A stretch of 64,000 nucleotides of DNA from Epiperipatus broadwayi (GCA_028023455.1 JAQFVV010000002.1:10106001-10170000); one strand, 5' to 3'; counted from the stretch's first letter, positions 8,065 to 62,047 are shown. Notes: generated from the sequence alone by a model not told the origin. Program-made: numbers and translations.

Positions 8065-8918
8065 TTCAAAACTCTCTAAGCCAGAGTAATCAATGGATCC
8101 CAGAAGGCTTGCACATAAAATCCCCATCTAGTGCCTACTCATCCAATATCCCCAGCCTAGTTTCTGGCTTGTGGCCTTCATTAGTGAGGAGCCTTAGATC
8201 TGAGAGCACTGCACCTAGATCTTAGGATCTAATGCAACCCTCCAGCAGCCACCTTTTATCTCTACTTAACTACAAAACCATGAGTCTTACCTTGAAAACA
8301 CTAATATTTTCAATCCAAACTCATTATTATATAGTCATTAGGTCTGAACTCAGTTCAGTACCTTACTCTGGCTTTCACTGAGTGGCAATACGTATAGAGA
8401 GTTTTGCCTGTTTTAATAACAGTTATAAGCAAGCATAGAAAATGGTGATCATGTGATGTTTATTGGGTTAAAATTAATTTTGCCTAATAGGATAGTGATG
8501 GTTATGGTTATTAAAGAACCAGCCACCAAAATGTATAGTACTGAACTGAGTTCAGACCTATATGATTATATAAGCTAATGAGCTTGGATTGAAAATATTA
8601 CAGTGTTTTCAATTTGACTCATGGTTTTGTAGTTAAGTAGAGATAAAAGGTGGCTGCTAGAGAGTTGCATTAGATCCTAGGATCTAAGTGCAGTGCTCTT
8701 TGATCCAAAGTTCCTCACTGATGAAGGCCACAAGCCAGAAACTAGTCTGGGAATATTGGATGAGTAGGCACTAGATGGGGATTTTATGCACAAGCCTTCT
8801 GGCATCCATTGATTATTCTGGCTTGCACTGAGTGGCAATATCTATAGAGAGTTTTGCCTGTTTTGATAACAGTTACAAATAAGCATAGAAAAGGATGATC
8901 ATGTGATGTTTTTTGGCT
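8065..8918 (+). mobile_element. Composite insertion of a ~370-bp hammerhead-bearing dispersed repeat (family H): inverted copy + 3' fragment + sense copy
   Basis: ~8079-8360 is the reverse complement of ~8537-8825. The same 3' block (CTGGCTT.CACTGAGTGGCAATA...GATCATGTGATGTT) occurs at ~8368-8470 and ~8818-8918. A 12-bp direct repeat TAAAAGTAAACA lies at 8053-8064 and 8919-8930. Confidence 0.8.
8714..8751 (+). ncRNA. Minimal type I hammerhead ribozyme motif (family H), predicted cleavage after GUC 8747
   Basis: CTCA-CTGATGA-A-GGC(CACAA)GCC-A-GAAACTAGTC-TGGG: intact CUGANGA and GAAA cores, palindromic stem III ACTAGT, GUC triplet, stem I CTCA/TGGG. Confidence 0.75.
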
Positions 8919-9369
8919 TAAAAGTAAACAAGAGAATGAAGAATGTATCTCTTTATATTGTGGCTAGAGATTGGAATCCAATTTTAGGAGAAACTTGTTT
9001 AAATCTCTAGGCATTCAAATAAAAATAATACAAGAGTCCAAATAGAATCTGAAATCTGGGATAAATTTCCAAAACTGTTCAAGCTGAATCGATCAGAATT
9101 GAATACACTACTGATTGATATAAAGTTATGGTTATGATGATCAGCCTGTTGTCTGTGGACCATGAAAGGTTTCATTTACTTTGAAAACCAAGGAGTTGAT
9201 ATGGTTATACTCACTGTAGTAATTTTGAAACCTGATGATACTGTACATCTTTGCAGTGACTATTACATAATTGTGAATAAACCTATGCAGTGACTTGCAT
9301 AATGATATATAATTTAAGAAACAAACCAGTACTTAGTGTTCAGGAGTAGTGTTCAGGATATTATCTTCT

Positions 9370-20700: not shown

Positions 20701-21081
20701 GGGTTAGTTCTTAGGACTGCGTTGATAGTGTGGATGATTCTATAGATTATATCTGATATGTTAAGTGTCCATCCATTTACCTGTATAATGGCTATGAGGC
20801 AGTTAGAGTCTATATGAATTATTTTGAAAAAGGTTATTTTAGATTTTTTATTAAAAAGAATTGCTACTCCACCAGATGCAGAGGAGGAGAAGGAATAATG
20901 GAAGTATCCAAATTTTTTGTATTCTCTGTATGATGTTTTGGTCAGATAGTGTGTGAAGTTTTGTTTCATTGAGGCAAAGAACATCAGGTGTATTATGCTT
21001 AAGCCAGAATGATAATGCTTGGATTCTGCCAAGGGAGTTCATGCCTCTGACGTTAATCGATGTTATGTTGAAAGTCATCAT
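17765..21081 (-). pseudogene. Frameshifted ORF2 (APE + RT + zf-RVT-like finger) of copy 2
   Basis: MMTFNITSINVRGMN..CLNETK, LMLGDFNH, IDLLY, VQLDIAGAFDSV, PQGSPLS, SYMDD and CTLCQRQEETTDHFLFEC across ORFs 20851-21081, 19764-21032, 18730-19722 and 17765-18679. In-frame 21-bp duplication IKDIESIIKD at ~19550-19590. Confidence 0.93.
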
Positions 21082-28197: not shown

Positions 28198-28364
28198 ACT
28201 CTCCATACAGTAATGCCAATCTGTGCCAACCAGAGTAATCAATGGAAGCCAGAAGGCTTGTGCATAACTCCCTCTGGCTGGCACAGGGTGGCACTACTTT
28301 ATGGAAAGTTTTGCCTTGTTTAATAACAATATGTGCTAGTATGAGATAGTGATCACGTGATATT
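28198..28364 (+). mobile_element. Short fold-back copy of family H (variant subfamily)
   Basis: ACTCTCCATACAGTAATGCCAATCTGTGCCAACCAGAG is inverted at CTCTGGCTGGCACAGGGTGGCACTACTTTATGGAAAG. Shares CAGAGTAATCAATGGA and the TGATCA.GTGAT tail. Confidence 0.7.
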
Positions 28365-29599
28365 TATACCACACAGTGCCTACAAATTATTTAATGCTCT
28401 AATGGATAAAATGAATACTTTCAAATAAAAATTACAAAGACAAAAATATTGGATAAACCATTCTTGGAAATTGATTTGTATATATATAGTGATACTTTAT
28501 CTATATGTGTAAATAATTTTAAACTACAAGGATATACAGGATGTTCTGTTGAAAATTTATATTGACTGTTGATAAACTTCATCTTATTTTTGTATTGTAT
28601 TACTTGTTTCATAGCCATTGGATATTTAATGAATTCTATTTGAATTTTATTATAAAAATCTAAAGTGCATTATGACTTTGGATAACAAATATTTTATCAT
28701 TAAATGCAGGTTGTTTAATTTCATTTAAAATTTATTATTATATTTGTATTTAAAAGATTAATTTAATGTATGTTTTGTATTAGAGCAAATATTTGTACAT
28801 ATCCTTAATCTGAGTAAAATTATAATGCTTATTTAGAACTTATTAATAATAATAAAATAGGTTTCATTTGATAACATATTCAGATTTTTCTTAACATCTT
28901 TATGGTGAATAAATCATATAAATAATGTTTTTTATTTAATATGCATCAATACATTTTTTTAACATTATATATTTTAATTTTTGATTTTAAAGAATCTCTA
29001 TCTCTTGGTCATCATACACCATTAGTTTTGTTGATACTTATGTATTAGACTTGCTTTGTCTTTTCATATTTGTATCAATCCACTGATAACTTTCTAATCT
29101 TGTGATCTGACCAAATAACACATACCCTTGGATCTTGTACAAACTTAAAATGATAAATTTGTCAAAACAGACTACATGTACATGATATTTTCAGAAGATT
29201 TACAAAGTTATTGGCAGTTTGAATACATATGCGAAAAAGCTTAGCAGTTGTAATACATGACAGAAATTGCACCAGACTAAATCTAACAATACTAGAAATA
29301 TTAATTTCTAACAATACTAAAAATATGAATTTCACACAAAAATAAATCTGAAAAAGTTTTATGTAATTCCCAAATGTTACTTTAAATATGGACAAAACAA
29401 TCATTAACTTACAAAATGCTTAAAATTTATAGATGTGGTACTTACTGTGAAATATATAATAGGAATTGTCATGATGATGAAACATTCAATTCATCTGTCC
29501 TGCTTTATTTTATATATTGCCTGCACAAAAATATTAAATTAAATTACTACACTTTTATTATTTCTTCAATGTGGCAGACTAATTTTTTTGATGTTGTCC

Positions 29600-30060: not shown

Positions 30061-30479
30061 AAAGAAAAAAATTGTAGTCTTAATCAGAAAATTGGAAAAA
30101 ATAAATCAGCACTGAAGTAATAAACACTTTGAAAAGAACTTGTCCAAACTTAATCTGGACAATAAATGAAAGTGTAAATTTATCACAATATTGGATGAGA
30201 TCGGATGAGATCACAGAGTTCATTTGATGGGATCACAAGGTTAGACATTTATCATGAATGTGAAAAGGCATACCATCTCTCCTACATTGCAGGACTAATA
30301 TATAAACACCATTTTTTCACTTCAATTCATAAGCCTTATTAAAAATTTATGTATTTTGTTTAATTTTCTTTATGCAATAGGTTGATATCTTAATTTGGGT
30401 ATAAAATTGATGTTATTCCCATTGCTCCTATTTATACCAGTACAATATATTATAAAAAATAGAAATGCAGATTATTTCC

Positions 30480-31420
30480 ATGTAAACAGAGATTATTTGT
30501 AGTTGCTTTTGATATTGCCAAAAAACTATCAATTACTACTAATTAACCATCCCTGAGACTAAAAAGTTTTTTCTAGCTCTTTTGTTGGTGTTTTTTTTCT
30601 AGAAGTAAAAGAAGGTCCTTTTTATTTTAAACCCAAGTTCTTATATGGATTTAAACCCCAAAAGCTATTTTTATAAGTTTGAGAGTATGAAAGAACATTT
30701 TCTTGACATTCTGCAAACAATATTTTAAACTTCTCCAGATAATTGTATATGTTGAATTAAATATTCCAAAAAAAAAAAAAACTCCAACAAAAAAGATATT
30801 ATAGGTTAATAAGAAAACTTGTTTAGCCTCAGGGATTTTCAATTAGTAGTAATTGATAGTTTCTTGGCAATATCAAAAGTTACAAATTATCTCTGTTTAC
30901 ATAAACATAATCCCCTCATTTCTAATCTTTGTTATTATAATAACAACCTAAAGAAATATTTAATTCAACATATTCAACTCTATGGAGAAGTTTAAAATAT
31001 TGTTTGCAGAATGTCAAGAAAGATATGATTCTTTAATATTCATACACATATAAAAAATAGCTTTCTGTGTTCAAGTCCATAAAATAATTTGATTTGAAGT
31101 AAAAGACCTTCTTTTACATAAAAGAAACTTCAATTAAAGACCTATTATAGATTAATGAGAAAAATTATTTTACCTCAAGGATCGTCAATTAGTATTAATT
31201 GATAATTTCTTGGCAACATCAAAAGCTACAAGTTATCTCTGATTACATGAAAATAATCTTAACAATCTATGAAAATATTTAATTCTATATATACATATAC
31301 AGTATAACGGATGGTCAACTATACCTGGATTTGCACTTGTCCACACACCAAATATAACAGATGGGAAAATAACTTGCAAACTGTAATACTATGCAGATGT
31401 AGCAATCTGGTGTAGGATAA
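30480..31420. mobile_element. Rearranged, partly inverted LINE RT fragments
   Basis: 30480-30575 is inverted at ~30812-30902, with a third direct copy at ~31170-31250. PQGFSIS..KLSLF (30826-30900) and YADVAIW (~31388-31410) resemble RT motifs. Confidence 0.5.
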
Positions 31421-34126: not shown

Positions 34127-35424
34127 TAGTAATAATAAATAAAATAAAAATTCATATAACTCTACAATACTAGCCAAAAAAACTAAACTTCATTAAAACT
34201 CTTCCACAAACATGGTTTTATTTATTAACAAATAGATCTTTTCAAATGAAATTCAACTAAATATACCACCAATATATACCAAAAAAAATAGATTTCTCAT
34301 CATTCACTTCAAAAGTCAATTTCCTTTAATATCAAATGATGTCTTTATGAGATTGATGGTTTCAGATTCAACATATTTTATCCATCAAATATTTTTTTAC
34401 TTTTTTTTTTTCAATTTATTTTTTTCATAGAAGATAACCTCTGCATTGTCAAATAATATTTTATGACCGCTATTCAGTTCATGAATATACAAAGCTGAGT
34501 TATTATATTTATTTTTAACTCTAGGTCTTATGAGTTTTAACTTTTCATTAAGACTTAATTTACTCTGCCCTATATAAATTTTATAACAACTACAAGCAAT
34601 TTTATAAACTACTCTAGGAATAGATTTACAATCAATTATCTATTTTGAACTATTTAGTAATAAATTTAAATCAAGTCCTTTTTTCCAGGCCACTTTCATA
34701 CCACCCAATAAAAAACTATTCTCATAAATCAAGTTACTAATTGATAACTTATATGTCAAAGAAATAAATTCTTTATTTCTTTGCCATATAAGTCATTAAT
34801 TATTAATTGATTTTAAGAAATTTTTATTGGGTAATAAGAAAATGGCTTGAAAGAAAAGCCTAAATTTAAATTCATTACTAATTGGTTCAAAACAGTTAAT
34901 TGATTACAAATCTATTCTTGGCATGGTATAAAAAAATTCTTTGTAGTTTTCATAAAAATTATATAGGCTAGAGTAAATTAAGTCTTAATGAAAGATTAAA
35001 ATTCATAAGAATAAAGTTAAAAATAAACAGAATAACTGAGCTTTGTATATTAATACAGGTTACAAAATATTATTTGACAATACAGAAGTTATCTTTTAAG
35101 GAAAAAAATGAATTGAAGAGTAAAGAAAACTTTGATAATAAAATATTTTGAATCTGTGGCCATCAATCTCATGAAGACTTGTTGATGTTAAAGGAAGTTG
35201 GGTTTAAAAAGTAATGATGGGAAGCTATTATATATATATATATATATGGTATGTTTATAGCTATTATATATATATATATATATGGTATGTTTAGTTGAAT
35301 TTCACTTGAAAAGTTCTATTTGTTAGTAGATAAAACCCATGGTTGAGGAAGAGTTTTAGTAAAGTTTAGTTTTTTGGCATGTATTGTAGTGTTATATAAA
35401 TTTATATATCTTGAACTATTACTA
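34127..35424. mobile_element. ~1.3-kb imperfect palindrome made of a Penelope-like 3' end
   Basis: Arms of ~640 bp around the apex AAGAAATAAA-TTC-TTTATTTCTT (~34770). The right arm reads LCSFHKNYIG*SKLSLNERLK (GIY-YIG) and is collinear with 63340-63830. Confidence 0.8.
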
Positions 35425-38240: not shown

Positions 38241-40787
38241 TCGGTTCGGTATTCTACGACAAAAAAATCAGCCGATTCTTCTTTTTTTTTGTTTGTTTGT
38301 TTTATTTTTATAACTTATAAATAAATCTATTTCCATTTAATGTTAACATTTACAAGCCAAAGTCAAACTTTGGGAGAGGGGGAAAGGGGGGGAAGGGTGT
38401 TTCCAATTGCTAACAGAATGGAACACAAAAAACTCGAAGGTTGACAAAGTTTTGATGGTAATTCTCCAAAACATCAATATATACAGCAATTAAAACCAAC
38501 TTTTTGGGCTCTTCAGGAAAAAAACAGCAGGCATGCAGCTTCAAGTTGTTTTGTTTGATAACCCAGTTCCAGCAGTCAGAGAAGAATTATTTCTTTGACA
38601 TTCGCAAAGTTTCCTATTTCAGCCATTTGATTCAGCTCGCAGTTATTGTCGCACGAAATGTGACTTAGAGCATGATTTGATAGGAATCACACTTAAACCT
38701 ACACTTGTCCAATTTTTTCAGCAGGAAATGGGGGCTAGGGAAGCATGAGACTCTGCTCATAATTGTTAGTAGACCTTCCTAAAACATGGGAGATAGAGGG
38801 GGAGGTGGTCTTAATGAATATTAAAATAGTTTTGACAATCAGAATTCCAGCCACCCTCAGACAATACTGTAGCCAAAAGTGAAATGTGATCGCACATCCA
38901 AAATGTTTAGCCCAAATCTGAGCTGTAAGCTGACACGATAGCTTCTGCGGCAGATTGACAAATCTCATGTTTCTGTGCATTAGCATTGAAATAAACACAG
39001 CAGCCACCCACCCCCCATATCAACGGACTATTTCTAGGCTTACGCATTAGAAATAGAACGTCCAATAGCGGCAGAGGCTGCATAAATGGCATATTTCTGT
39101 GTGCTATCATAGAAAAATGCCCTCCGGCAGTTTCAACATGCTATTGTAAAACAACCGGAAATAATTATCCAATAACTATAAAAAAACTGAGTTTCATAAT
39201 CTTATTCCAATGTATTCTTTTAACAACTTAAGTTCTTTTAATCTTTCTCCATACATAAATTAAAATCTCTGCCATTTAATCATTGACTCCACTAAGTCAT
39301 AAACTCTTAATCTTGATTTCTAAACTATAAGGATTTAGGTAAACAAATTTTTGAATGACTGGATTTATAAAAAGCTATATAACATTCTTGTATCCTCTTC
39401 AGCAATGAATCAATGATAGAATTTTTCAAAAGTTTGATTCTCTTCCAATCAAAGAATACAAAACTCTACCATTTAAGTTTTTTACCCACATAATTTGCAT
39501 TATATTCTTCATGTTGAACAGTTTTAATAAAGAATTTCCAGCTTTGAAGGAGATACACCATTAATGCTGTTTTAATAAAGATTTTACTACTTTTACTAGA
39601 AGTAACTAAAATTAATTAAAACTCATGTTAAAAAAAAACATGATTAGTAAAAAAAATAAATCATGCATCATAGGGGGGAGCAAAGTTCTCTGATAATGTG
39701 ATACATAGACTTTTATAAGTTTATAGTGGGCCATATGTAAAGAAAAGTTTTTCCTTTGCAATATATGAAGTGTTCATAATAGAGGAAAATATTGTGATCA
39801 TGCTGGAAAACAAGTTTCTATTTTCAATGAATTTTATGAAAGAAAGCTTTTAAAATTCATTTCAGGAAATCTTAGGATAATATCCAGCATTGTGTGTGTG
39901 CGTATGTTCATATGTAATAAACTCATAATCAGCTAAGTAGATTAGAGACTAATCATATACTCCAAACATGTATTAGTCAATTAAATAATTTATCATTTTT
40001 ATGGTAAATTTTGAAAAAAAAAATCTTTAATTTGTGCATGGATAATAGTTCACACAGGTAGTTATATTTGCACATCGTCTGTAAATAGTCACTAAGTCAA
40101 TGATTTTATTGACTTATATTTGATTAATTTCATCTGGAAATCTAGAACTACAAATGAGATGATTGAGGTTTAATAAATATATCCTTTGGAGTTACTTTTG
40201 GAAATATTTTTACATTCATATTTTTTTATGGGAATTGAATGAAGATTACACAGAGCAGGAAAGAGAGGCCATTCACTTTGTTAAAGATACCATATTAGAA
40301 TGGTTTTTGAATGAAATATAGAGGTAAACTATATTTGTAAGTAAGAGAGTAGTAAAATTTACATTTTCAAATATGTTTTTAGGATTGAATTTTAAAATTA
40401 ATTTTACTAAGTAAAAAAATTGGAGTGATAAGCTCATGTAGATTACTATTGTAAGCTATATAGGCTGGATGTATAAAGTTGGTTATAAAATACTGTGTAA
40501 TATCACAATCAATTTATGTTCAAATAAGAAATAAAATCATCATCAGTTGTCAGTATATATGTACCATATACATAAAAGAAGAATAGTATATAAAAAGAAT
40601 GAAATTACAGATAATTGATTGAAAATTTTAAATTTCTGATATAATATTTTAATCTTTTATGTGCATATGTCACTTTCTGATGCATTAAAAAAATTAATAA
40701 ATAATTTTTAATATTAATAAAAGTATTATTCAACTTGTCAGGTATATTTTTAATGAACTAATGAAGAGATTTATTTAAATATTTTTA

Positions 40788-40882
40788 AAACAGGCAAAAC
40801 TCACTATATGTATTGCCACACACAGCAAATTAGAGTAATCAATGGATGCCAAAGAAGTGATGATCATGTGATGTTTATTGGC
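40788..40882 (+). mobile_element. Minimal family H copy (inverted arm joined directly to the 3' tail)
   Basis: AAACAGGCAAAACTC..GAGTAATCAATGGATGCCA then TGATCATGTGATGTTTATTGGC. Flanked by TTAAATA(T/C)TTTTA at 40775-40787 and 40883-40895. Confidence 0.75.
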
Positions 40883-43800
40883 TTAAATACTTTTACAAAG
40901 TGATTGTCATTGCCAAATTGTATAATGAAATCCAGGTTTAGATAGGATATAAATGAAAAGAAAATCTCAAGTTTCAATAGTAATCAATATTTTTATTAGA
41001 TAATTAATGGAAGTTAGAACACTGAGATTCTTCTTTTATATATGGAAATTAGATATTGTGATTTGGAATTCTAAATGAAAGCAGATTATATCAATTATGT
41101 CTTAATTATTTTTACAATAATATATTTTTATTTTAGACCAAAAAGTTATTTTAGAAACAAAATATGATTTATTAGATGTACTGTGATAAATGAGTACAAA
41201 TTATAGGGAAGAAGAACTGATGGCATGTACAAAATAATTGCCATAGAATTTTACCTGGCAAACTCAAAGTTTGTGAATGAGGTGTTAAAGTCTTTCATGT
41301 CTTTGAAAGACCTTGGATAATCAAAAGTCACGTGAAGTAATTTATTCTGTGTATAAGTATGATAAAGAGCATGAGTGAAGAGTGAAGCAATGAAGAGAAG
41401 ACAAAACATGTCAGTATTTTTTCCATGGATTGCACACATGGAAAAAAGGATATTTGATGAACTAGGAAAATTTTTTATTGTATGCAAAAAATAAGTAATT
41501 TATTCTGAAGAGTCAGTTATATAAAATGATAAGAATTTGTATAAATTATCATGCTTACAAAAAATATCTATAACACATACAATGAGAACAGAATTTAAAA
41601 TGGGAGAAAAGTTTTTTTCTAGTCTTATCAAGGTTTGATTTTTTTTTAAAAATATATATATACAATATATGTGTTTTTATTTAAAATACTATTTAGAAAA
41701 TTTTGTAAATATTACCTAGAATTAATTTTTTAAAAGTATATTATGGCATTAATTATTTCTTGCAAAAGAATATCTTTATTTTTTTAACATTTATTAGTCT
41801 CGTTATCTTAGTAGTCATGGATCATTGCTTAGTTGTTATAATGCTTTTGCTGTAGCTATAACAACATAATAAGTAATTTATTTTACTTTTATGATTATAT
41901 ACAATTACAAAAACGAGAATATATGATTTGTTAGCAAAAAATTTTAATAGATAATATAACAGCTATTAATTGAGCACAAACTCAACAATAAGTCTATCAT
42001 ACAAATACAAACACACACAAATATCTCCTTAATAAATGTTCACTACTATAAGTTATAAGTAAGCAACTAAATTTTATTGATATGTTTTAAATAATTATGA
42101 AAATGTAGAATTAATTTTAAAAAAAGATAGCAAATCCTGTAATTTATTTAGAACTTATGTTATTACTTAATTTTGAATCATTTAATTAGACAATATACAA
42201 ATATGTCTGTGAGCTTAATTTGTCATCCTATATATATATATGTCACTACAGACTTATAAATAAATCATATATATATATATATGTTTGTGCAAGACAGTTA
42301 GATGCATATGGATTATCATCTTATACATATGATATATTACCATAAGCTTATTATAAGTCATATCCTTCATCAAAAAAAAATACTGAAATCAGAATTTTGG
42401 CTTTATACATGAACAACAAGCTCCACTGACTATGAATTCCTCAAATATCTACACAAAGATATATTATATTGCTGTTATATGTTAGTTCAAATCTTATTAA
42501 TATATTAAAATAATTTAAAATCTTGGATATAGTAATTTTCATTGTATTCATATAATTTATAAGATTTTTATTACAAACATAAATTAATGTACATTAAATT
42601 AAATGAAACAAATTCTTCATAATAAAAAATTATTTCTTTATAGTTTATTTCTAAAGTTGTTATCTTTTAAGAATTTTCAATAATCTTTGTATAGTTATAG
42701 AGTTATTAAAATTATTAAGATTTTTTTTTTTTTAATAAATAAAAATTTTGATTATTTTTTTACCACTTTAAAATAACCTGTATTATAGGAAAGGGGGGCA
42801 ATTCAGGAATTTCATGCAACTAAATTAATTAATTTTATTTGGGGTTATGGAATGTAAAACTTAAAAAAAGAATCATGCTTAAAAAATATATACCATCAAA
42901 GTAATGCATCAAAAATTACCTTGTTTGCAATACTTGAAAGAAGTGAAATGCTAATGGGGGGGGGGAGAGATGAACTTCTTATTTATTTCACTAATACTCC
43001 ACAAATTTAATCAATAGATATTTCTTCAGTTGATAACATTCTCCATCATTAGAACTTATATCTGGCACATTCAATTTCAGATATTTTACTTATTTCAGGG
43101 TATATTTCATCAAATGTATTGAAACAATGGAAGAGAAAATAAAGACAAAAAAGTGTGATAGTAATAAAAAAAATATGTTAAATGAGCCAATTCTACAAAA
43201 TCTAAAAATATAAATTTAGAATTGACAAGAGAAAAAAAACATTGTCAAAAATAATTATAATCAAAGAATAACACAAAAATAAAAGTGAATATCTGTGATC
43301 AATCCTTGTAAACATTGACTAAAATTCATTATAGTACAAAAAAGATAAAACAATCAAACAAAATTAAGAAATAACAAGTCCATTATGCATATGCAAAAGT
43401 TAATAACTTGTAGAGAAGATTTTCCTCTGTCATTAACTAAGGTACTGATGTTCAGAAAATCAATAGACTCTCTATTGTCAAGACCTAATGGAAAATTTAT
43501 TTAGTTTACATAATGGAAGTTTATTGAAGCAGTTAACTATATAGATTCATTCTATACAAAATATAATATTTACAGTATACATTTTAATGAAGACTATTCA
43601 CTTTATGCAAAGTGCAATATTATATAACCAATCCTGTAATAAAGTCAGTGTTGTGTGTCAAAGGTTGTTCATTCTTGAATTTTTAGAAGACTATCACATA
43701 TTCAACTTTCATAAAAATAATTTTAAAGAATAATTTTTGAATACGCAGACATCATTAATATGCAGAGGAAATTGGTATTCATTTAGCATTCTTTTTACAA

Positions 43801-43887
43801 AAATGCATTAGTTTCTCAAAATGTAAAAAAAAAATAAAAAGTGATACAAGCATAAAAATTTACCACATTATAAGTAACTGGTGAAGA

Positions 43888-44058
43888 TTAAACAAGGCAA
43901 AACTCTCTCTCTATACAGTAGTGTCACCCTGTGCCAATCAGAGTAATCAATGGATGCCAGAAGACACAGGGTGGCACTACTGTATGGAGAGAGTTTTGCC
44001 TTGTTTAATAACAATTATGTGCTAGTATGAGATAGTGATCATGTAATGTTTTGTGGTT
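43888..44058 (+). mobile_element. Short fold-back copy of family H (variant subfamily)
   Basis: Arms 43887-~43933 and ~43966-44009, 49-nt tail. TAACTG(G/A)TGAA(G/A)A occurs at 43875-43887 and 44059-44071. Confidence 0.75.
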
Positions 44059-46056
44059 TAACTGATGAAAAGTCAACTTAACATTTAAAAATTATTCTAA
44101 ACTTATATTGTTATTTAAATAAACAGTTCTGACCACAATACACTAATTGGTTACTATAATTTTAATTGATATGGTGACTGGTTGTAAAATAAACAGTAGT
44201 TTAAAAATTTTATTAAGTCTTTGAGAGTCATTAGCAATTTTCTATTCAAAGCTAAGATTATAATAGTGAGTCAAAATGTTAAAGAATGAGCATTTGATCC
44301 ATTTAATAATTAAATGGAGACACAGGTAACAAAATGCATAAAGTTTGAGAAAGACAATCACCATTACTTTACTTCTAATAGGAAAGATGCTGTGCTTTGC
44401 ATTTATAGAAAAATAAAACAACAACAAAAAAGATAAATATATATATATATCATGATATTGCATTATTATCACAGTTGTTGACCTTTTGAAAGCTTTTCTG
44501 TTAAAGATTAACCTTTATTAATAAAAATTATTCTTTGGCAAGATGGAAAATCAGTTTCATCTTTTTTCATAAGATTATATTGTTCTAATCTTTTAATCAT
44601 TAATTAATATTTAATTTCTATACAATTTCTTTCAATAAACTATATTCATTATTAATTTATTTTGGAAGTATCATTATTCACTGAAACTACTATATGATTA
44701 TTTTAATTATATAATTATTTTAAACCAATAAAATATCACATAACTCTATCATCTAACCTCAGCTTACATATTGCTATTTTATCATCATAACATTTCTTTC
44801 ATCACCTCTATGCCACCTATTACCCACAGAGTAAAGATACCTATAGGTATTAAAAAACAAGATATTATAATATATAGATGCTGAACTGATTTCAGATCTA
44901 TACAAGTAAGTTGCCTTATATTGAAAGCATTTATGTGTTTTTTAGTTTGGCCCAACATCTTGATGGTATAACAAAAAGATAAATAATGGTTTCTAGAAGA
45001 AAGATGTATTAGATCCTGAATATGCACTGTTCCAAGATTCAAAACTCTTTACTGATAAAAACCATGCACTTGAAATCAGTCTAGAAATATACGATATGAC
45101 AACATGAAATAGAGATTTATTTATTAAACACTATCATTTAGTATATTCTTATTTAATAAGGTTTATTTAAACTTATGGGAAATCAAAAATCTTGATTTTT
45201 GTCTATATTAAGATATTAGACCAGAATGAAAATTGGAATCCATTTTTTTTATTATTTATAGATTGTTATTTTTACAACAGTTTGAAGATTCTACCGTTTA
45301 TATAAACTTAGACTGTTATCATGTGATTTGTAATATATATATATCGTATTATCTTAATATTTAACATAGACTCTCAATTAATTAACGCCATTATCAAGAT
45401 ATCAATAATGATTTTTTCTTCTTTTCTTCAGGCTTTTTCTGTCACGTTTACACATACCTGCTATTTATTTTACTTTTTTTTTTTTAATCTTTTCTACTTT
45501 TTAATTTTTTTGCCAACTATTGGGTCAAATGCATAGTTTAAAATGAGACTTAAACGCTTTAATTTTTGATATTCACATAAATAAGTAAGACAGAAACTTT
45601 ATCAGTCAGTACTTAACTAATTTTAAAAAAAAAAAAAAAAACACAGTTTGCACATATTAATGATTAGTTTTAATGCTTGAAGAGTGATGTAAAAAAAAAG
45701 AGAATCTTGAATTACTATTTATATCAGGAAGCTTTTTATGTGAAGTGGAATCATATTACCGCCCCTAAAGATGAGAAAGAGCAAGTCAGATTTTAAAAAG
45801 GATTCTCACATCTCTGAAATTGTATAACAACGATAATAAAAAAAATACTGAAAGAGGATTATTATATTTTCCTATCAAAATATTATTAACCTTATATATA
45901 TATAACATTATGTAATATTTTTATTGCACAATATTTTTGCAGCATGTTCTGTTTTGTACATATATTATGTATGTATTCATGTATTTGGGTTTACAATTAT
46001 TTTTTAAAAATAATGCTGCAGAGGACTGAATTCATTAAAGTTAAGAGAGTGTAATA

Positions 46057-46139
46057 GTGGCAATACGTATAGAGAGTTTTTGCCTGTTTTAATAACAGTT
46101 ATAAACAAGCATAAGAAATGGTGATCATGTGATGTTTAT
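46057..46139 (+). mobile_element. 3' fragment of family H
   Basis: GTGGCAATACGTATAGAGAGTTTTTGCCTGTTTTAATAACAG...GATCATGTGATGTTT, nearly identical to 8382-8461. Confidence 0.8.
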
Positions 46140-48473
46140 AATACTACAATAGTGAGTTGCTAGTTACTCATGCTGTTTTGGACAGAGAACATAACATATT
46201 TAAAAACATTTAAAACTTTGTACATAATTTAAAAATATGTAAAAATATTTTATACAAAAAATATTTAATAAAAATGGCAAAGAGGATTTTTATGCCATTA
46301 AATGAAAAGAACAAAGGTATATTGTTAATGAGATGAATTCGTTCTCATATGTAGTTACACATGTAGATGTTAATAATAAGCTTCAATGGTGTTAAATATA
46401 TGACTAATTCTTCGGTTATTTATTATTCAAACAAATATATTTATAGTTCAGTTAACAAAGATGAGTCAACGGGATATAATCCATTAAAATAAAGGCTATA
46501 GCATAGACAAGTAATATTAATGCATAATTAACAACACGATTAGAATTGACTATCAATTCATAAGTATTGATAAATAATAGATATTATGAAGTCTTGATAC
46601 GAGTTTGTTGTAGAAGAAATCATTTAATGTGATATCTCAGATTACATATACAAAATGCAAATTAGTTATAATATATACATATTACATATAAATAATATAT
46701 CATTATTGAAGTCATATGTATTATATGCTAAGTTTATTTTAAATTATGTAGCATTGTTTTTAAACATTTATTTAAGTTTGCTAAAATTAGCCGTTTAAAC
46801 AATTAATAAACCACAGAACTCACCTTGTTAAACAATCTAATTGATGTGATAACCAAATAGATAGAAATTCTTTGAGATAGACATTAAGACAATTTTTTAA
46901 TAATTATTATTGTGAGTATATAAAGAAAGCTGCAGAGATTAATGAATATGATATAAATAATAATGGAAGAACAGTTACAATGGGCTCAGTAATGGTATTA
47001 ATAATGAAATGTTATTATGAGTATAAACTATTGTCTTAAATAAATGTATTTACATAGATTGTAAAAAGGCATATTTTAAATGTATAAAGACATTTAAAAA
47101 AAATGCAATTTCTATATTGGTTTTTTTTTATTTTTAAAAAATAAACAAAACTTTTATAATTTGTTTATTAGTGCTATGTGATTATTAAGTGTTAAAATTT
47201 AAGAATTAGTTGTATGTGTTCATTGAGATTATCCTACATGTTTGATGTTATAAAATATTTGTTATTGCTGCTTCTCATTTGTTACTATTGTCTTTGCTCC
47301 AGATAATAGATTGCTTTCAAATAAATTTGTTACCTATTTATATATTTAATTTTTATGTTTCATATGTTTTATTTTTGTAGACAGACACAAATGTTGCATG
47401 AAGCTATTTTTCAGGAATATACATGTGCTTAACATGGTTGCAATGAATTTTATTATTTTGAATTTGAGTACATGTTTGTACTATATTAAGTTCATTGCTC
47501 AAAGATAGGTGGAATAACTAGAAAGTAGATTCTGTGACTCATGGATAATACTTAATCATTTTTAGAGATAATTTACTTTTGCTTGCCACTTGTATAGAGC
47601 AATTTATTATTAATAAAACTTTATATCAGTCAAGTGGCAAAATAAATTACATTTTAATTAAATGTCACCAGAAGAAATTGATAACATTAAATAACAGTCA
47701 ATCTCATGTATATTATTAAGACTAACAATACCACATTTCTGTGAAAATAACACCAGATCTTATATTAATTTTTGCTCCAAAAGACACTATAGGGCTTATT
47801 TCCAGGAGATGTCTTATTTTTTATATACAAAAATCTACATTTATTCAAGTCCTTTTTTTCTTTACAGGAACCTGTAAAATTCTTACTCTGGAAGTCATCC
47901 ATAATTTGTTTCTTGTAGTCACCAAAATAGTTTTTTTTTTTGTACTCATCTTATCTGATGATCAGGATATTATTCCATTTAAATTTACCATTAAATCAAG
48001 TGTTAATTGAAGGCTTGCAAGACAGGAGTTGACTATAGTTAAAAGTGATTTGTCCACACAAAAGCAGCAAAAAAATGCAAGCATAAAAATTCAGAAAATA
48101 TTTTTATTTCACACATGCACATTAAATATGTCAATTTATAACAAGCAGCATATTCAATTACAACTACATCCATTATCAAGTGTGTACATTGTAAACAGTT
48201 CCAAATTAGTTGTAATAATCCTACTTGGGTAGTCTTTTAAAAAAAAAATTTAGGAGAAAGATTGATGATTTAACTGTATTTTTATATTGGACTATTTCCA
48301 TCATCTAATATGTGTGTTGAATGTCTTTAGAAAAGTTTAATTTTGAGTTAAATGTTCCAAATGCATTCAACTGTTAGTAATATCACAGCAAACAAATGTT
48401 AATAATATCACAGCAAACAGGTTAGTATATGCACTAACTGTTAGTAATATCACAGCAAACAGGTTAGTATACG

Positions 48474-48516
48474 CACAACGTTTCGAGAGGTATTTTTCTC
48501 CCCTCTTCTTCAGGTG
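48474..48516 (-). ncRNA. Mirror copy of the same hammerhead motif (left arm)
   Basis: Exact reverse complement of 48727-48769. Confidence 0.75.
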
Positions 48517-48618
48517 TTGCTGGCCTGACCAGTGACAGTACTAGCATGGGATTCGAACCTGGGTCCTTAGATTCTTGATTATTGAAATTTAAGGTAACGT
48601 TCTAACCAACTGAGCCAT

Positions 48619-48700
48619 GGCAGGATGGCTCAGTTGGTTAGAGCATTACCTTAAATTTTAATAATCAAGAATCTAAGGACCCAGGTTCGAATCCCATGCT
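48619..48700 (+). promoter_or_regulatory. tRNA-derived Pol III internal promoter (SINE head); mirror copy on the minus strand at ~48543-48618
   Basis: A box TGGCTCAGTTGG (48626-48637) and B box GGTTCGAATCC (48684-48694). The acceptor stem does not pair, so this is not called a tRNA gene. Confidence 0.85.
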
Positions 48701-48726
48701 AGTACTGTCACTGGTCAGGCCAGCAA

Positions 48727-48769
48727 CACCTGAAGAAGAGGGGAGAAAAATACCTCTCGAAACGTTGTG
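48727..48769 (+). ncRNA. Minimal type I hammerhead ribozyme motif in the SINE body (right arm)
   Basis: CAC-CTGAAGA-A-GAGGGG(AGAAAAATA)CCTCTC-GAAACGTT-GTG: intact cores, 6-bp stem II, palindromic ACGT stem III, GUU triplet, 3-bp stem I. Confidence 0.75.
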
Positions 48770-48780
48770 CGTATACTAAC

Positions 48781-48915
48781 CTGTTTGCTGTGATATTACT
48801 AACAGTTAGTGCATATACTAACCTGTTTGCTGTGATATTATTAACATTTGTTTGCTGTGATATTACTAACAGTTGGTGCATATACTAACCTGTTTGCTGT
48901 GATATTACTAACAGT
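48781..48915 (+). repeat. 42-bp / shorter-unit tandem repeat in the SINE body
   Basis: The core TTTGCTGTGATATTA occurs four times in the right arm and three times (inverted) in the left arm at ~48370-48462. Confidence 0.9.
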
Positions 48916-51900
48916 TGAATGCATTTGGAATATTTAACTCAAAATTAAACTTTTCTAAAGACATTCAACACACATATTAGATGATGGAAATAGTCCAATA
49001 TAAAAATACAGCTAGAACACCATCATCACAAACCTTCAGAAAAACATTGATGATTTAACTTAAGATAAACTTTGATTATTAAAATCACTTGTGTTATTTT
49101 AATAAAAAAAGTTAGGGTGAAAAAATGTTTCAGAAATCAAACTATTTTTTTTAAAACTTGAATATTTAAAAGCTGCTATGATGAAAAGATCTAAGTATTA
49201 AATAAAATAAATTCCTAAATGTATATAAATGAAATTATAAATAGTACCTGATATACTTAGTTATAGTAGATAAATTGTTTTTCAATACAAGTAAAATTAT
49301 TTTTGTTGAAAATTGTCAATGGAAAAATACAAAAGAACTACATAATTTCATTATCATTTATTTAAAGCATTAATGTCAATAAAATTGTTTATTTATACTT
49401 TTATTACTTCATAATTTAAAATATGTTCATTGATGTTCTATGTGGCTAGCAATCTTAACTAGGGTTTATATTTAGAGTAGGGTTTAAATTATAAGCATCC
49501 TGAAAAATTATGCTAGGGCTTATTTTTTGGTTAGATCCCTTTTTGGGGGAAACATGGTAGTAAAAAACACACAATTTAAAAATATAAATAGCTCACTATA
49601 TATCAAAAGCTTTTAAAATCCCCTCAAAGAAACCAGTGAAAAAAAAAATTGATGGTGAAGATGTCAGTTAACTCCTAATATAGGGTGAAAACCAGTTCAA
49701 TAAAGAAAATATTTATTATTTTTATATAGTTGTTTTATTTCAATTGTGTTGGAACCATTACTGTAATAATATTATATACAATATTACAAGACAATACATA
49801 TAATATTAATAATAATAGCAATCATGACATAAACTTTTTGTTTCATATTTTTTCTTGTGAAACTAAGAACGAAATCTTCAGTGCAACCATTTAAAATCTG
49901 CAGCATGATATGATTGATAAATACTTTTTTCCATATGAGTACATTTCATATTTATTTATTAGTTTAAACTGTAATTCTAGTATGTTGCTGGATCTATAAA
50001 CAATTATAGTTTTCATCTGATAACTTCAACACTTTGTTATTCTGGAAATTAAAAAAAAGTTGAAGATAAACATTGGTTCTTAACTTCATCATCGTATATG
50101 GATTTCATATACTTTATTGACTAATAGCACTATTTAATAATTGACACATTAGAAATCTGATCCACAATATGATTAATACAGTAATTAATATATCAAAGTT
50201 TAAGTTGACATTTGATTCACTTTTAATGAGATTCTACAACCCAGTTTACTAAACATATCAATTCCACTTGTTACTGGAAGTTACAAGATGGTATATTCAT
50301 TTCTGCCCTAACAAGAGTTTTAAGGCAATGTTTAGACTATCTCATATTAAAAGTCTTAATAAATATTTTATAAACTTATAATTTAGTATCTTCATTTATA
50401 TTGTTTTATTAGGTAGGTATAAGTTATTGCTGTGCTTTTATTTAATTGCAATATAACATTTTTTTAAATTTATTTTCTCCACCTAATAAAATTAATACAA
50501 CATAATAAAATTGTGCCAGTTGGAGTTAACATTAATATAATATCTCACATTAGTTTAAACATATCACAAGAGCCTTATCAATTTCAAAATTGCAATAAAA
50601 GACATTAAGTATCTCCTATATAGTTCTGCTTATTTTTGAATTTATTCTGACTGAAATTACAAAATAATTTTCTTTTTTTTTCTTCTTGTTATCCCAAATA
50701 AATTATAAGTATTTTTATAATGCACACAGTAAATATAATTAAAATATTTATAAAATAAGGAGTAAATTTTCATTCTTATGAACTTCTGAGTTTGTTTAAA
50801 TTTGAAGTCCATTTGGCAGGATTTTTCTTTCAATATGTCTACCAGTTTTAAATGTGAACCTTTTACAATTATAAATTGACAGTAGCAATGTGTTTCATGC
50901 ATGTAGGTCAAATGGAGTTCCTACTCCATTAGTTGCAAGTTAAAATTCAATTCAATTCCATTTTTAATTCAGTTCAAATTCAGTTTTACTTTTTAATAAT
51001 TTTCAGCTTAAATTTTCAGTTTCATTATTTTCAGTTGTTATCATTTCTTCATTTAATTCTTCCTGGTTCTCCTCTATAAAAATCTATGTTGACCTATTTA
51101 TAAACTTTTATCAGAGAGGATGATTGTACAAATTAACAGAGCAATTGAATTATTGTATATGCATACATTAACATACAATTAATAATTCTCTATCTATAAG
51201 CATAAGTGATAACTAATTAAGCTGTTCAAAACTATTTTAAATTGCAATAAAAATATGCTTGAGAATTAATTATAAATATTAATTTAGAATAACTATAATT
51301 TTAAGTCTCCATGACTATTATTTAATAGTAATGAAATACCAAGTATTTCTATACTTTAATTTAATCATAATATTAATAAATTATTCTGATACTATTGAAA
51401 TTATTCTGACAGACTGCATATAAAAAGTCTCATACACAATCTGGCAGAGAGCCTATCACACATCTTGAACAGTTTAATTATTCATCACTCTCAGGAGATT
51501 TATAGATGAAGTTTATTTATTTTCATAATATAATTTAGCAATCATGATAACACACCACTGATATAATATACCTATTTGATATATTTAATTATTGTCAATT
51601 AAAATTTAAAATTTTATATAATTGACCATTTAAATAGGTCTTGACAAACATCAAGTCAACCATAAGGTTACAATATATATATAAATGATACATTTTGTGG
51701 GTTCGTCCATGTATGATTTTAATTATAAACATACTGATGTTTCAGCTTGATCTCATTAAGCCATCAACTGAGTAATGAATAAAATATTATAAAGATACTT
51801 GTAGAGGTACTGAAACACTAATTTATAACAATGCTAAAGTTCCATCAATAGAGGGGAAAAAACAGGTACATAAAATTTAAAAAATAAAATGTCAGAAAAT

Positions 51901-56480: not shown

Positions 56481-56745
56481 TCTATAAACAAATAAAGTGA
56501 AGTTTTGGAAACCAATTTTTAGTGATATATAAGTGATAAATTTAACTTGGGATAAATTTAAATAATTAAAAAAATATTTTGGAAATATTTATACAAAAAT
56601 TATTAGTTAGTCTATTATATTGGAAATATTTATACAAAAAATATTAGTTAGTCTATTATAATAAGCATGGCTTTTTGAGATATAAAAAAACTTGAAGATG
56701 ATCAATTTTCCCATAACTTTGAAAATAATATATATATAAGGGTAA

Positions 56746-57236
56746 AAACAGGAAAAACTCTCTATAGTATTGCCACTCAGTGCAAGCCAGAGTAATCAAT
56801 GGGTGCCAGAAGGCTTGTGTATAAAATCCCCATCTAGTGCCTACTCATCCAATATCCCCAGACTAGTTTGTCTTGTGACCTTTGTCAGTGAGGAGCCTTA
56901 GATCTGAGAGAACTGCATCTAGATCTTAGGATCAAATGCAACCCTCCAGCAGCCACCTTTTATCTCTACTTAACTACAAAAGTATGAGTCTTGAAAACAC
57001 TAATATTTTCAATCCAAGTTCATTATCTTATATAGTCATATAGGTCTGAACTCAGTTCAGTACCTATATATAGTCTGGGGATATTGAATGAGTAGGCACT
57101 AGATGGGGATTTTATGCACAAGCCCCTGTAATCCATTGATTACTCTGGCTTGCACTGAGTGGCAATATGTATAGAGAGTTTTGCCTGTTTTAATAACAGT
57201 TATAAGCAAGCATAGGAAATCATGATCATGTGATGT
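56746..57236 (+). mobile_element. Fold-back copy of family H
   Basis: Long inverted arm to ~57063, short sense arm ~57071-57191, ~45-nt tail. TATATATAAG(G/C)GTAA occurs at 56731-56745 and 57237-57251. Confidence 0.85.
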
Positions 57237-57304
57237 TATATATAAGCGTAATAAGCTATCAATTAAAATGGAATAAATTTAGAGAAACTGGTTACAATAA
57301 TTAC

Positions 57305-58190
57305 AATAAACTCTTAAGCTATCAATAATCTCAATATGTAATGATGGTACCACTTTTATTTATGGCCTGATGTATTTATATAGACACTAAAAATTGCAAT
57401 TTGATCAAGGAATGTGAGATTAATAATGCAAAGAAGTTTAAGCAAACCTTATTAATAAGGCAAATATAACCTTTTCTGAAAGCAAACTAATAAATAGTCA
57501 ATTTCACTTTCCAAATTCCATATAAAGTATATAATTTACTATAAATGTAGATGATAACAATCAACCTTAAGCTATCAACAATCTCAACCTGTAATATGTT
57601 TTCAGAACAGGTTACAACTGTCTGATTAATGAAGTTTGTTTGAACTTCTTTGCATTATTAATTTCACATTCCTTGATCAAGTTGCAAACTTTAGTGTCTA
57701 TATAAACATACCAGGCCATAGAAAAAGGTGATACCACATTTATTGTTTAAGGAGGTTGCCTTGATTACAGGTTGAGATTGTTAATAACTTAAGGATTGAT
57801 TGTTATCATCTACATTTATAAACCTATTAATGCCTTGAATAGCTTTATTGCCTTAGTAAATATATATTTTACATAGAATTTGGAAGGTATACATGACTTT
57901 TATTAGTCTGCTTTCAGAATCTGGAAGTTATAATTCACTATTTATTGCCTGCTTTCAGAATAGGTTATATTCGCCTGATTAAAATGGGAGATTTGTTTAA
58001 ACTTCTTTGCATTATTAACCTCACACTACTTGGTCAAGTTGCAGTTTTTCACATATAAAGGTGGTAACATCATTATTGTTTAAGGAGATTGCCTTGACTT
58101 AGAGATTGAGATCATTGAGAGCTTAATGATTGATTATTATCATCTACATTTACAATCCTACTAAAGCCTTGAGTAATTTGTTTTATTAGA
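57305..58190. repeat. ~300-350-bp unit tandem array with an orientation switch near 57600
   Basis: AACTTCTTTGCATTATTAA..CACA..CTTG.TCAAGTTGCA occurs forward at ~57642 and ~58000 and inverted at ~57400-57445. TTATCATCTACATTTA occurs forward at ~57803 and ~58137 and inverted at ~57542. Confidence 0.8.
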
Positions 58191-61779: not shown

Positions 61780-62047
61780 TCTATCTGGAAAGTTCCTATT
61801 CCCAGACCAATTGTTTTTGAGCTTATGGTTCACCTCAGTGAGGAGCTAGAACATTCAGACACTAGATCTAAAATTCAACTCAAAACAGCACTTATTTAAT
61901 ATGTAATATTTAAGTAGAAATTCTGAAATTTTCACTGGAGTTAAAGACATTTTCATGTCCGAAAATTTCTAAGTTTCTACTTAAATATTATGTACTAAGT
62001 AAGTACTAGAGTTGACATTTTAGATCTAGTGTCTGAATGTTCTAGCT
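61780..62047. repeat. ~205-bp hairpin attached to a diverged relative of family H
   Basis: AGCTAGAACATTCAGACACTAGATCTAAAA (61845) is inverted at ~62018-62047, with an inner pair TAATATTTAAGTAGAAA / TTTCTACTTAAATATTA. The upstream CCCAGAC..TCAGTGAGGAGC resembles 56858-56896. Confidence 0.7.

Follow-up and report, generated by a model that had tools for sequence, protein, structure and literature searches.

Our results suggest that the palindrome at positions 48261-49060 of the window (the whole 64-kb stretch of DNA that was analysed) arose from one insertion of the Penelope-like element (PLE) type, in which both ends of a staggered break probably primed reverse transcription. Priming by both cut DNA ends explains the head-to-head pair of copies better than fold-back of one copy does. 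The element would be a non-autonomous, tRNA-headed, hammerhead-bearing retroelement mobilised by PLE machinery. The observations are the anatomy of the locus, two classes of family 3' end, a PLE-type ribozyme motif and six further loci with a matching layout; what we infer is the PLE partner, the sequence of steps and the manner of cDNA joining. The locus is composed as follows:

48261-48275, no strand: left copy of the target-site duplication (TSD), ATTGATGATTTAACT, an exact 15-mer that directly adjoins the outer end of the left arm
48276-48618, minus strand: left arm, the inverted tail-less copy, 343 nt (arm alignment)
48474-48516, minus strand: minimal hammerhead motif of the left arm, the mirror image of the right-arm motif and identical to it in sequence
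48619-48624, plus strand: loop GGCAGG, tRNA-model positions 1-6 (arm alignment and Rfam tRNA model)
48619-48701, plus strand: tRNA-like head of the plus-strand copy (Rfam tRNA model 1-71 end to end, 16.4 bits, below threshold)
48625-49009, plus strand: right arm, 385 nt, comprising the palindromic portion of the plus-strand copy (arm alignment)
48626-48637, plus strand: A box TGGCTCAGTTGG, read directly
48684-48694, plus strand: B box GGTTCGAATCC, read directly
48727-48769, plus strand: PLE-type minimal hammerhead of the right arm (motif scan; hallmarks per PMC4209133; cleavage predicted)
48767-48917, plus strand: tandem 42-nt units, starting at the predicted ribozyme cleavage site (arm alignment)
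48980-49027, plus strand: predicted RNA stem GATGATGG / CCATCATC (fold of the 427-nt unit)
49010-49045, plus strand: AC-rich tail, on the right arm only (arm alignment; first 2 nt, AG, ambiguous)
49046-49060, no strand: right TSD copy ATTGATGATTTAACT, exact 15-mer

The arm alignment resolved 48276-48618 (minus strand) and 48625-49009 (plus strand) as inverted copies of one ~390-nt element, with the 6-nt loop between them. The left arm lacks the element's first 6 nt, GGCAGG being present in the plus-strand copy only, and one 42-nt unit: the right arm holds ~3.5 such units and the left arm one fewer, the extra unit lying at ~48849-48890. The inter-arm mismatches (n=4) are all transitions (48643/48600, 48645/48598, 48659/48584 and 48931/48354), and inter-arm identity is 98.8%. 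The left arm here forms a strict subset of the right one. The first-pass annotation had reported the palindrome with its loop, the differences between the arms and the direct repeat; all were recovered at the positions claimed (arm alignment, 15-mer search), and the differences it gave between the arms, about four transitions and one 42-bp unit, were found exactly so. In the 64 kb, ATTGATGATTTAACT matches only 48261-75 and 49046-60, with up to 2 mismatches allowed.

The view that this TSD brackets the whole structure needs a correction. The exact 15-mer does stand on both sides, but the right copy does not abut the palindrome: a tail of 34-36 nt (49010/12-49045), unpaired in the left arm, separates the two. 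Similarly, the repeat is exactly 15 bp long, but 2 nt (AG) at the left junction can be assigned either to the element or to the target, which makes the duplication 13-15 bp. A single retrotransposition event within one target-site duplication, as had been proposed, is supported. The last part of the tail matches the 16 nt preceding the left TSD at 10/16 positions, a likeness compatible with chance in A-rich sequence. We could not confirm the suggested host, a pogo element: the flanks yielded no coding remnant, and their ORFs of at least 50 aa were judged by appearance to be AT-rich noise, though the right flank is itself repetitive. No paralogue of the flanks was found within the window. As a single RNA strand, 48261-49060 is predicted to fold into one hairpin (-627 kcal/mol, versus -173 for shuffles), and this predicted fold gives ~343 bp, in agreement with the idea that a read-through transcript would form long dsRNA. 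Rfam microRNA matches across the apex (MIR9563 and others) are of a generic long-hairpin kind, below threshold, and were rejected.

The A and B boxes stand at tRNA spacing, which makes the head a putative internal pol III promoter of the type found in tRNA-derived SINEs (SINE2). The Rfam tRNA covariance model aligned with it end to end (16.4 bits, gathering score 29, E 0.53), and in this alignment its anticodon arm is longer by ~14 nt; ARAGORN called no tRNA. Counting back from the A box had placed tRNA position 1 at 48619, and the sub-threshold alignment of model positions 1-71 to 48619-48701 agrees with that arithmetic. The location of the apex at the 5' edge of the tRNA-like head is likewise supported, and both tRNA-like promoters point outward from it. 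Some family contigs from public DNA runs extend upstream of 48619, a candidate for the true 5' end, with common sequence.

The motif at 48727-48769 reads CAC / CTGAAGA plus an extra A / helix II GAGGGG...CCTCTC (6 bp) / GAAA / CG / TT; cleavage is predicted between 48766 and 48767, and GTG follows. PMC4209133 lists four hallmarks of PLE minimal hammerheads, and all 4/4 are present here: an extra nucleotide between 9 and 10.1, G10.1-C11.1, a long helix II and a palindromic 15.2-16.2. Helix III is cut down to A-U plus CG, resembling dimer-dependent minimal variants. The Rfam hammerhead models (Hammerhead_1/3/II/HH9/HH10) gave no match at E up to 1 over 2.5 kb, nor at E up to 10 over 189 nt, and metagenome contigs scanned with the hammerhead pattern gave 0 hits.

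The element's 3' end, ...CCTTCAGAAAAAC, has no poly-A or simple repeat. The 31-mer contigs from public DNA runs (n=3) were compared with 48600-50600, 2001 letters that comprise one arm and the right flank. In the three runs, 473-485 contigs leave the element at 49010, the commoner of the two canonical family 3' ends, and 257-261 leave it at 49045/6; the flanks beyond the two ends are unrelated to one another (agreement 0.45-0.46). These two termini coincide with the outer ends of the two arms, that of the left arm being the equivalent of 49009-49011. Thus, the family has the two genomic 3' end classes by which two adjacent RT start sites, as in PLEs, would be seen. The loop of the predicted stem at 48980-49027 holds the proximal (tail-less) RT start, 49010, and the stem's 3' strand lies within the AC-rich tail, an arrangement that compares with the AC-rich stem loop of PAc (PMC11167929).

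Most family contigs are 90-95% like the 48261-49060 copy, and the two arms have at least 5 family-minority letters in common. Contigs placed at 48616-48617, which must read across the loop, were present in all three DNA runs with a summed depth of 510-6178, possibly from other copies (single-copy contig depth is 22-33). Among the contigs listed, none that is locus-specific bridges the apex or the junctions, and the matches listed include neither a joint that changes strand nor a loose end ahead of 49046. The RNA run X8 contains the element at an element-to-flank depth ratio like that of the DNA runs, and X8 is therefore no demonstration of transcription. No further copies of the element were found in the window (two 20-mers, up to 3 mismatches; blastn).

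Six more TSD-flanked head-to-head insertions, belonging to two other families, are present in the window, and their layout is identical to that of 48261-49060. Five are family H pairs; the other is:

11306-11864: palindrome with a tail of 34-38 nt (11865-11898) and a TSD of 14 bp

A hammerhead-like motif in this palindrome was not counted as a ribozyme, being non-canonical (A3/U8, no U16.1). In the family H pairs (n=5) the left arm is tail-less and the right arm tailed in 5/5. The tail-less arm extends further 5', which gives each arm unique sequence, clearly so at loci b, d and e; at locus d the tailed arm is the tail alone. Duplications at these related loci are 9-14 bp. Exactly one tail was found in 7/7 insertions, for which the chance is at most 0.5^7 = 0.008 whatever the tail frequency. 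The palindromes at 30469-31259, 34127-35424 and 57297-57809 (old, arm identity 82-83%, no clear tail or duplication) were excluded from these counts.

PLEs have an inverted copy next to them on the 5' side, and often only one end bears a tail, of 30-40 bp (PMC8557442, PMC3846280). A tail of this kind at one end only was found at 48261-49060, 11306-11864 and the five family H loci, and the 5'-adjacent inverted copy lies inside one TSD. Moreover, purified PLE protein in vitro cleaves and extends both target strands, and two adjacent RT start sites define the tail (PMC11167929). On this model, the target would be cut on both strands ~15 bp apart, leaving two 3' ends, each of which would prime reverse transcription of the element RNA. 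The right end would start at the distal site (49045) and produce the tailed arm; the left end would start at the proximal site (the 49010 equivalent) and produce the tail-less arm. Both cDNAs would run essentially to the short template's 5' end, to position 1 on the right and position 7 on the left. Their head-to-head junction would involve no microhomology; probably one cDNA made an end-to-end template jump onto the other's 3' end, and fill-in followed. The four transitions would post-date the insertion, and the 42-bp unit difference may be post-insertion too, or reflect slippage while copying. A PLE reverse transcriptase or GIY-YIG gene was not found in the 64-kb window.

The first-pass annotation had proposed instead that reverse transcriptase turned to copy its own cDNA: the right-primed cDNA reaches the RNA 5' end, its 3' end folds back, and the enzyme copies it in one run. 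The subset relation of the arms, the loop of merely 6 nt, the 98.8% identity and the minority variants common to both arms all agree with such a snap-back, and a self-priming tendency of Penelope has been inferred from palindromes at inverted junctions (Arkhipova et al. 2013, PMC3846280). It is nevertheless not supported, and we consider it unlikely. The copying must halt exactly at the family's canonical tail-less 3' terminus, where the left arm stops (a ~3-in-427 chance), and fold-back copying is disfavoured because it gives no reason for a halt at the 49009-49011 equivalent. The loop, moreover, has no base pairing to hold a fold-back primer. Finally, a snap-back is impossible at family H loci b, d and e, whose layout matches that of 48261-49060: since each arm there has sequence missing from the other, one cDNA copied back cannot yield them. 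In addition, purified PLE protein cleaves and extends both target strands (PMC11167929).

That the palindromic unit spread as such, as a foldback/MITE-like DNA element or a retrocopied palindromic master, or that an older solo copy underwent a DNA-level inverted duplication, is very unlikely. The depth of 510-6178 at 48616-48617, against 22-33 for single-copy contigs, may mean that the same apex recurs at several loci; a recurrent apex is expected anyway, however, if a short RNA is often copied through to its 5' end, and only 11-27 contigs per run pass the stretch ends, compared with 166-229 that break at 48618. The ends are asymmetric, with the tail on one side only, a 15-bp duplication is long for a DNA transposon, and with the promoters pointing outward from the apex no internal promoter could transcribe the whole unit. 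The window also contains two APE+RT LINEs, and the 15-bp duplication would fit LINE-type target-primed reverse transcription, followed by inversion through twin priming or a template switch. An APE-type LINE insertion is highly unlikely, however: the element does not end 3' in poly-A or a microsatellite and shows no similarity to these two LINEs (blastn), thus also lacking the LINE-derived 3' tail of a SINE2, and its tail, two 3' termini and minimal hammerhead are PLE traits. In the L1 twin priming attributed to Ostertag and Kazazian (2001), both target 3' ends reportedly prime reverse transcription and give an inversion in one duplication; the second primer is said to anneal inside the same RNA, so that the inverted and direct parts are different segments. 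Twin priming would thus give adjoining, non-overlapping parts of one RNA, whereas both arms here start at element 3' start sites and overlap completely, covering the same 343 nt. As for an artefact of assembly (a chimeric long read from fold-back, for instance), assemblies are known to have trouble with inverted structures of the PLE type (PMC8557442) and no listed contig bridges the junctions of 48261-49060. This is extremely unlikely even so, given that the arms differ in four substitutions, the 42-bp unit and the tail, that the flanks are continuous with an exact duplication at canonical family ends, that six similar loci lie in the same window, and that short-read contigs from the same sample cross an apex of such form (the depth at 48616-48617).

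Priming from both break ends, our preferred reading, has difficulties of its own. The left arm as a strict subset of the right counts against it and leaves room at 48261-49060 for the fold-back that we disfavour. Since the arms are 98.8% alike and have minority letters in common, two separate cDNAs would need to come from one template or from sister templates; gene conversion between the arms could be another source of this likeness. In addition, the one-tail rule implies that the two priming events are not independent, and the simple two-ended model holds no account of the rule. Also counting against our reading are the negative search for a PLE reverse transcriptase or GIY-YIG gene in the window, the failure of Rfam's hammerhead models to match, and the lack of a locus-specific bridging contig among those listed. 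A speculative and quite unlikely elaboration is that the arms were copied from two RNAs dimerised via the palindromic helix III (ACGU), in a dimeric PLE particle priming both break ends at once. If this were true, the PLE minimal hammerhead would serve mainly to pair templates and not to cleave, which would explain the near-identical arms, the one-tail rule and the dispensability of hammerhead cleavage in vitro; with its pol III tRNA-like head, the element would then represent the first SINE class dependent on PLEs instead of LINEs.

The insertions of endonuclease-positive PLEs (Penelope/Poseidon, Neptune, Nematis, Naiad) show pseudo-LTRs, an inverted, 5'-truncated copy alongside and, at one of the ends, a tail of 30-40 bp (PMC8557442, PMC3846280, PMC11167929). 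The element shares with them the head-to-head copy in one variable-length duplication, the one-ended 34-36-nt AC-rich tail, the two alternative family 3' termini and the PLE-type minimal hammerhead. In contrast to them, its unit is ~390-430 nt and non-coding, with an A/B-box head in place of the ORF between pseudo-LTRs, and both copies are essentially full length, which gives a near-perfect palindrome and not a short inverted stub. Metazoan non-LTR retrozymes and non-autonomous PLE derivatives, including MRC1 of Chlamys, are likewise short, non-coding and hammerhead-bearing, are thought to use PLE enzymes and have duplications >4 bp (PMC7229834; bioRxiv 10.64898/2026.07.22.740005; PMC8557442). 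Unlike the element here, retrozymes are described as tandems in head-to-tail order, whose canonical type I hammerheads yield circular RNAs, and neither a tRNA-like head nor head-to-head palindromes are described for them in the retrozyme literature searched. By description, the element also resembles another group in joining a tRNA-like head to a hammerhead. These are the schistosome SINE-like elements Sm-alpha and Sj-alpha, which Ferbeyre et al. (1998) and Laha et al. (2000) are said to have described as short high-copy retroposons with a tRNA-like pol III head and a hammerhead. Compared in the same way, their hammerhead is a canonical efficient type I and that of the element the PLE minimal type. 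We know of no tail or palindromic insertion described for Sm-alpha or Sj-alpha. Both are touched on in PMC4209133.

The origin of PLE inverted and tandem structures has been stated as unresolved (PMC8557442), and the sole biochemical PLE study shows both-strand extension and two RT start sites with no link to inverted copies (PMC11167929). Small non-coding passengers such as this one preserve the entire event within <1 kb: the two start sites, the two stops and the junction between them. The insertions in the window set three constraints, namely a canonical start per arm, exactly one tail per insertion and independent truncation of the arms, from which a genome-wide census here could build a quantitative test of two-ended priming. 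The SINE concept would also widen past LINE partners through the union of a tRNA-like pol III head with a PLE-type 3' module.

Finally, with MITEs and foldback DNA transposons the element shares long inverted arms between short direct repeats, and such palindromes resemble MITEs to annotation pipelines; they are also potential sources of hairpin RNA. Unlike MITEs and foldback transposons, in which symmetric TIRs reach both duplications and the duplication is short and fixed, the locus has tailed asymmetric ends with 34-36 unpaired nt, a 13-15-bp duplication (9-14 bp at the related loci) and, as arms, complete retroelement copies whose 3' ends face outward; solo copies of its family occur too, and they end at the same two 3' termini. 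A true TIR element is present elsewhere in the window, at 61850-62041.

Our analysis indicates that the head-to-head palindrome at 48261-49060 is an instance of the insertion architecture known from Penelope-like elements (PLEs), which in the literature searched we did not find described on a short tRNA-headed element. The palindrome, its coordinates and the differences between its arms, as reported in the first-pass annotation, all stand in the assembly by direct reading, repeat finding and alignment.

Parts of the palindrome
48261-75 and 49046-60: duplication ATTGATGATTTAACT, flanking the whole structure
48276-48618, minus strand: left arm, an element copy (arm-versus-arm pairwise alignment, repeat finder, direct reading)
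48619-48624: loop GGCAGG, 6 nt, between the arms
48625-49009, plus strand: right arm, an element copy (arm-versus-arm pairwise alignment)
49010/12-49045: tail AGCTAGAACACCATCATCACAAACCTTCAGAAAAAC, 34-36 nt, AC-rich, on the right arm only, with no partner on the left

In the pairwise alignment the arms show four mismatches, all transitions (48643/48600, 48645/48598, 48659/48584 and 48931/48354), and the right arm has one additional 42-nt unit. Folding of the full 48261-49060 as a single RNA strand gives one predicted hairpin of -627 kcal/mol. The duplication is found at just two sites in the whole window, even with up to 2 mismatches tolerated. The annotation had a single duplication bracketing the palindrome; exact copies do lie on both sides, but only the left one adjoins the palindrome, since on the right the unpaired 34-36-nt tail, which had been missed, intervenes.

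The plus-strand unit, 48619-49045, is 427 nt long and contains the following features.

Features of the element unit
48626-37, plus strand: A box
48684-94, plus strand: B box
48727-48769, plus strand: hammerhead motif CAC-CTGAAGA-A-GAGGGG(AGAAAAATA)CCTCTC-GAAA-CG-TT|GTG, from a motif scan
48767-48917: 42-nt tandem units

Counting back from the A box had put tRNA position 1 at 48619. The Rfam tRNA model, which fits end to end on 48619-48701, starts at the same base; its score is sub-threshold (16.4 bits versus a gathering score of 29), and ARAGORN called no tRNA in the element. As for the hammerhead, Cervera and de la Peña described four features that mark the minimal hammerheads of PLEs: an extra nucleotide between 9 and 10.1, a G10.1-C11.1 pair, a long helix II and a palindromic 15.2-16.2 (PMC4209133). 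By these published criteria the motif at 48727-48769 shows all four, and we consider it a putative PLE-type minimal hammerhead with a predicted cleavage site. No Rfam hammerhead model matched it, as expected because helix III of such a motif forms only in the dimer. The 42-nt tandem units start precisely at the predicted cleavage site. Note that each unit opens with GTG, the 3' strand of helix I. At the 3' end, GATGATGG (48980-87) is predicted to pair with CCATCATC (49020-27), within the AC-rich tail. In some subfamilies helix II and its loop are swapped for other letters, with the CTGAAGA and GAAAC(G/T)TT-GTG core kept (e.g. AGAATAATGCCACTTGAAACTTTGTGTG); at the sequence level, this suggests conservation of the ribozyme core between subfamilies.

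Next, contigs from three DNA runs of a single sample and from a putative RNA run were placed at 85% likeness on 48600-50600, which comprises one arm of the palindrome and the right flank. The element is a high-copy repeat (65,000-74,000 contig pieces per DNA run); the adjoining flank 49076-49337 is matched by a zero-mismatch contig at a depth of just 22-33. The 3' ends fall into two sharp classes, with 473-485 contigs exiting after 49010 and 257-261 after 49045/6. Beyond both, the loose letters agree at only 0.45-0.46, so the flanks are unrelated. Thus, the family has tail-less and tailed termini, 35 nt apart, and these coincide exactly with the outer limits of the left and the right arm, respectively. 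The proximal terminus falls in the loop of the predicted 3' stem. The target ATTGATGATTTAACT (48261-48275) resembles the element's own ATTAGATGATGGAAAT (48976-48991; 12/15 with one gap), the 5' strand of the stem that closes over the proximal start site; to judge from the sequences, this likeness could be due to chance or to the homing-like preference that PLE endonucleases are reported to have.

At the other end, 166-229 contigs break at 48618|48619. The letters upstream agree at 0.62-0.66 on (G/A)TATATGAAATTTCTACTGACTGTTGCCTT, the RNA-labelled run included, and therefore a subset of copies extends 5' of tRNA position 1 with a common sequence, a consensus that is not present in the window. 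Given this subset, 48619, where the tRNA model places position 1, is only a possible true 5' end. Contigs also cover 48616-48617 at a summed depth of 510-6178, which implies reading across such a loop, in a repeated family; per run, just 11-27 contigs read past the ends of the 48600-50600 stretch. At least five family-minority letters are common to both arms (48656, 48771, 48922, 48940 and 48969), and at 48659 the right arm alone differs from the family majority.

The same layout was observed at six further loci in the window, in two other families.

Sister loci
11306-11912: palindrome of another family, arms 11306-11593 and 11610-11864, loop 16 nt
8060-8927, 28198-28365, 40771-40883, 43868-44055, 46056-46137 and 56745-57237: copies of family H, a second hammerhead family
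8718-8750: hammerhead of family H, CTGATGA...GAAACTAGTC

The first of these palindromes carries a 34-38-nt tail (11865-11898) on its right arm only, a 14-bp duplication TACATGATGCATTA that lies within a local tandem repeat of ~40 bp, and a hammerhead-like motif that is present but non-canonical. Family H is represented by five head-to-head pairs plus a solo fragment (unit ~8478-8927). The left, minus-strand arm of every pair ends at ...CCTGTTTTAA(T) or before, and the right, plus-strand arm extends through a tail of ~43 nt to ...GTGATGTTT. At three of them (loci b, d and e), diverged duplications of 9-14 bp can be made out. The tail-less arm extends further 5' than the tailed arm in 5/5 pairs, and at locus d the tailed arm is made up entirely of a portion of the tail; each arm therefore holds sequence that is missing from its partner, which is clear at loci b, d and e. 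The apex positions in the unit vary (8538|8813, 8531|8743, 8784|8817, 8796|8884 and 8796|8826). The copy at 8363-8927 is also partly arranged as a head-to-tail tandem.

In known PLE insertions, an inverted, 5'-truncated copy lies beside the main copy, the duplications vary in length, and there is a 30-40-bp tail, frequently confined to one end (PMC8557442, PMC3846280). [quoted passage not shown] By analogy, both this picture and the biochemistry fit the locus at 48261-49060. Each of two 15-nt 3' overhangs would serve as primer for a cDNA, which would start at the distal site (49045) in one case and at the proximal site (49010) in the other, and both cDNAs would reach the template's 5' end, at positions 1 and 7, given how short this template is. 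The left cDNA would then jump end to end, landing on the 3' end of its right counterpart, and fill-in would follow. The junction, ...GAGCCAT|GGCAGGATGG..., leaves an available CCATGG microhomology unused, from which we infer the end-to-end template jump. Two observations lie outside this simple two-ended model. Exactly one tail is present in 7/7 insertions (chance at most 0.5^7 = 0.008), which implies coupling between the two priming events; and arm identity, at 98.8%, is well above that of random family members, which points to both cDNAs stemming from one template or from sister templates, unless the arms were homogenised by arm-to-arm conversion.

It had been proposed instead that the reverse transcriptase turned back and copied its own cDNA. 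Such a fold-back is topologically possible, and at 48261-49060, taken alone, it may have occurred, since the left arm is a subset of the right arm. However, a fold-back gives no reason for the second arm to end at the canonical proximal start site and is unable to produce the family H pairs b, d and e, which together disfavour it. Twin priming during a LINE-mediated insertion is unlikely, since poly-A is absent, the arms overlap completely and the element has no similarity to the window's two APE-type LINEs. A one-sided tail and promoters that face outward also speak against duplication at the DNA level and against a palindromic unit that is itself mobile. Finally, an assembly artefact is unlikely: the arms differ in sequence, the exact duplication sits at the canonical family termini and the window has six sister loci.

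The element also differs from other known systems. In the literature searched, metazoan retrozymes are head-to-tail tandems with canonical hammerheads, whereas here the copies are head-to-head and the putative hammerhead is minimal. In the schistosome Sm-alpha element, a tRNA-like head is joined to a canonical hammerhead; here the head is likewise tRNA-like, but the putative hammerhead is of the PLE minimal type. The remaining elements of the window are as follows.

Other elements in the window
1013-4426, plus strand: APE-type LINE with Exo_endo_phos, RVT_1 and zf-RVT domains
17765-23511, minus strand: APE-type LINE with the same three domains and, upstream, a 603-aa ORF with a zinc knuckle
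30469-31259, 34127-35424 and 57297-57809: older palindromes, arm identity 82-83%
61850-62041: short element with 21-bp terminal inverted repeats AACATTCAGACACTAGATCTA and CTAG on either side

Both LINE copies are split into several ORFs. In the three older palindromes neither a tail nor a duplication is recognisable. The element at 61850-62041, a true TIR element, differs from the retroelement palindromes in being a MITE-like DNA transposon. Note that the tailed end points rightward in the solo copy and in every one of the seven head-to-head insertions (8/8; two-sided chance 0.008), a possible sign of orientation bias with respect to replication or transcription.
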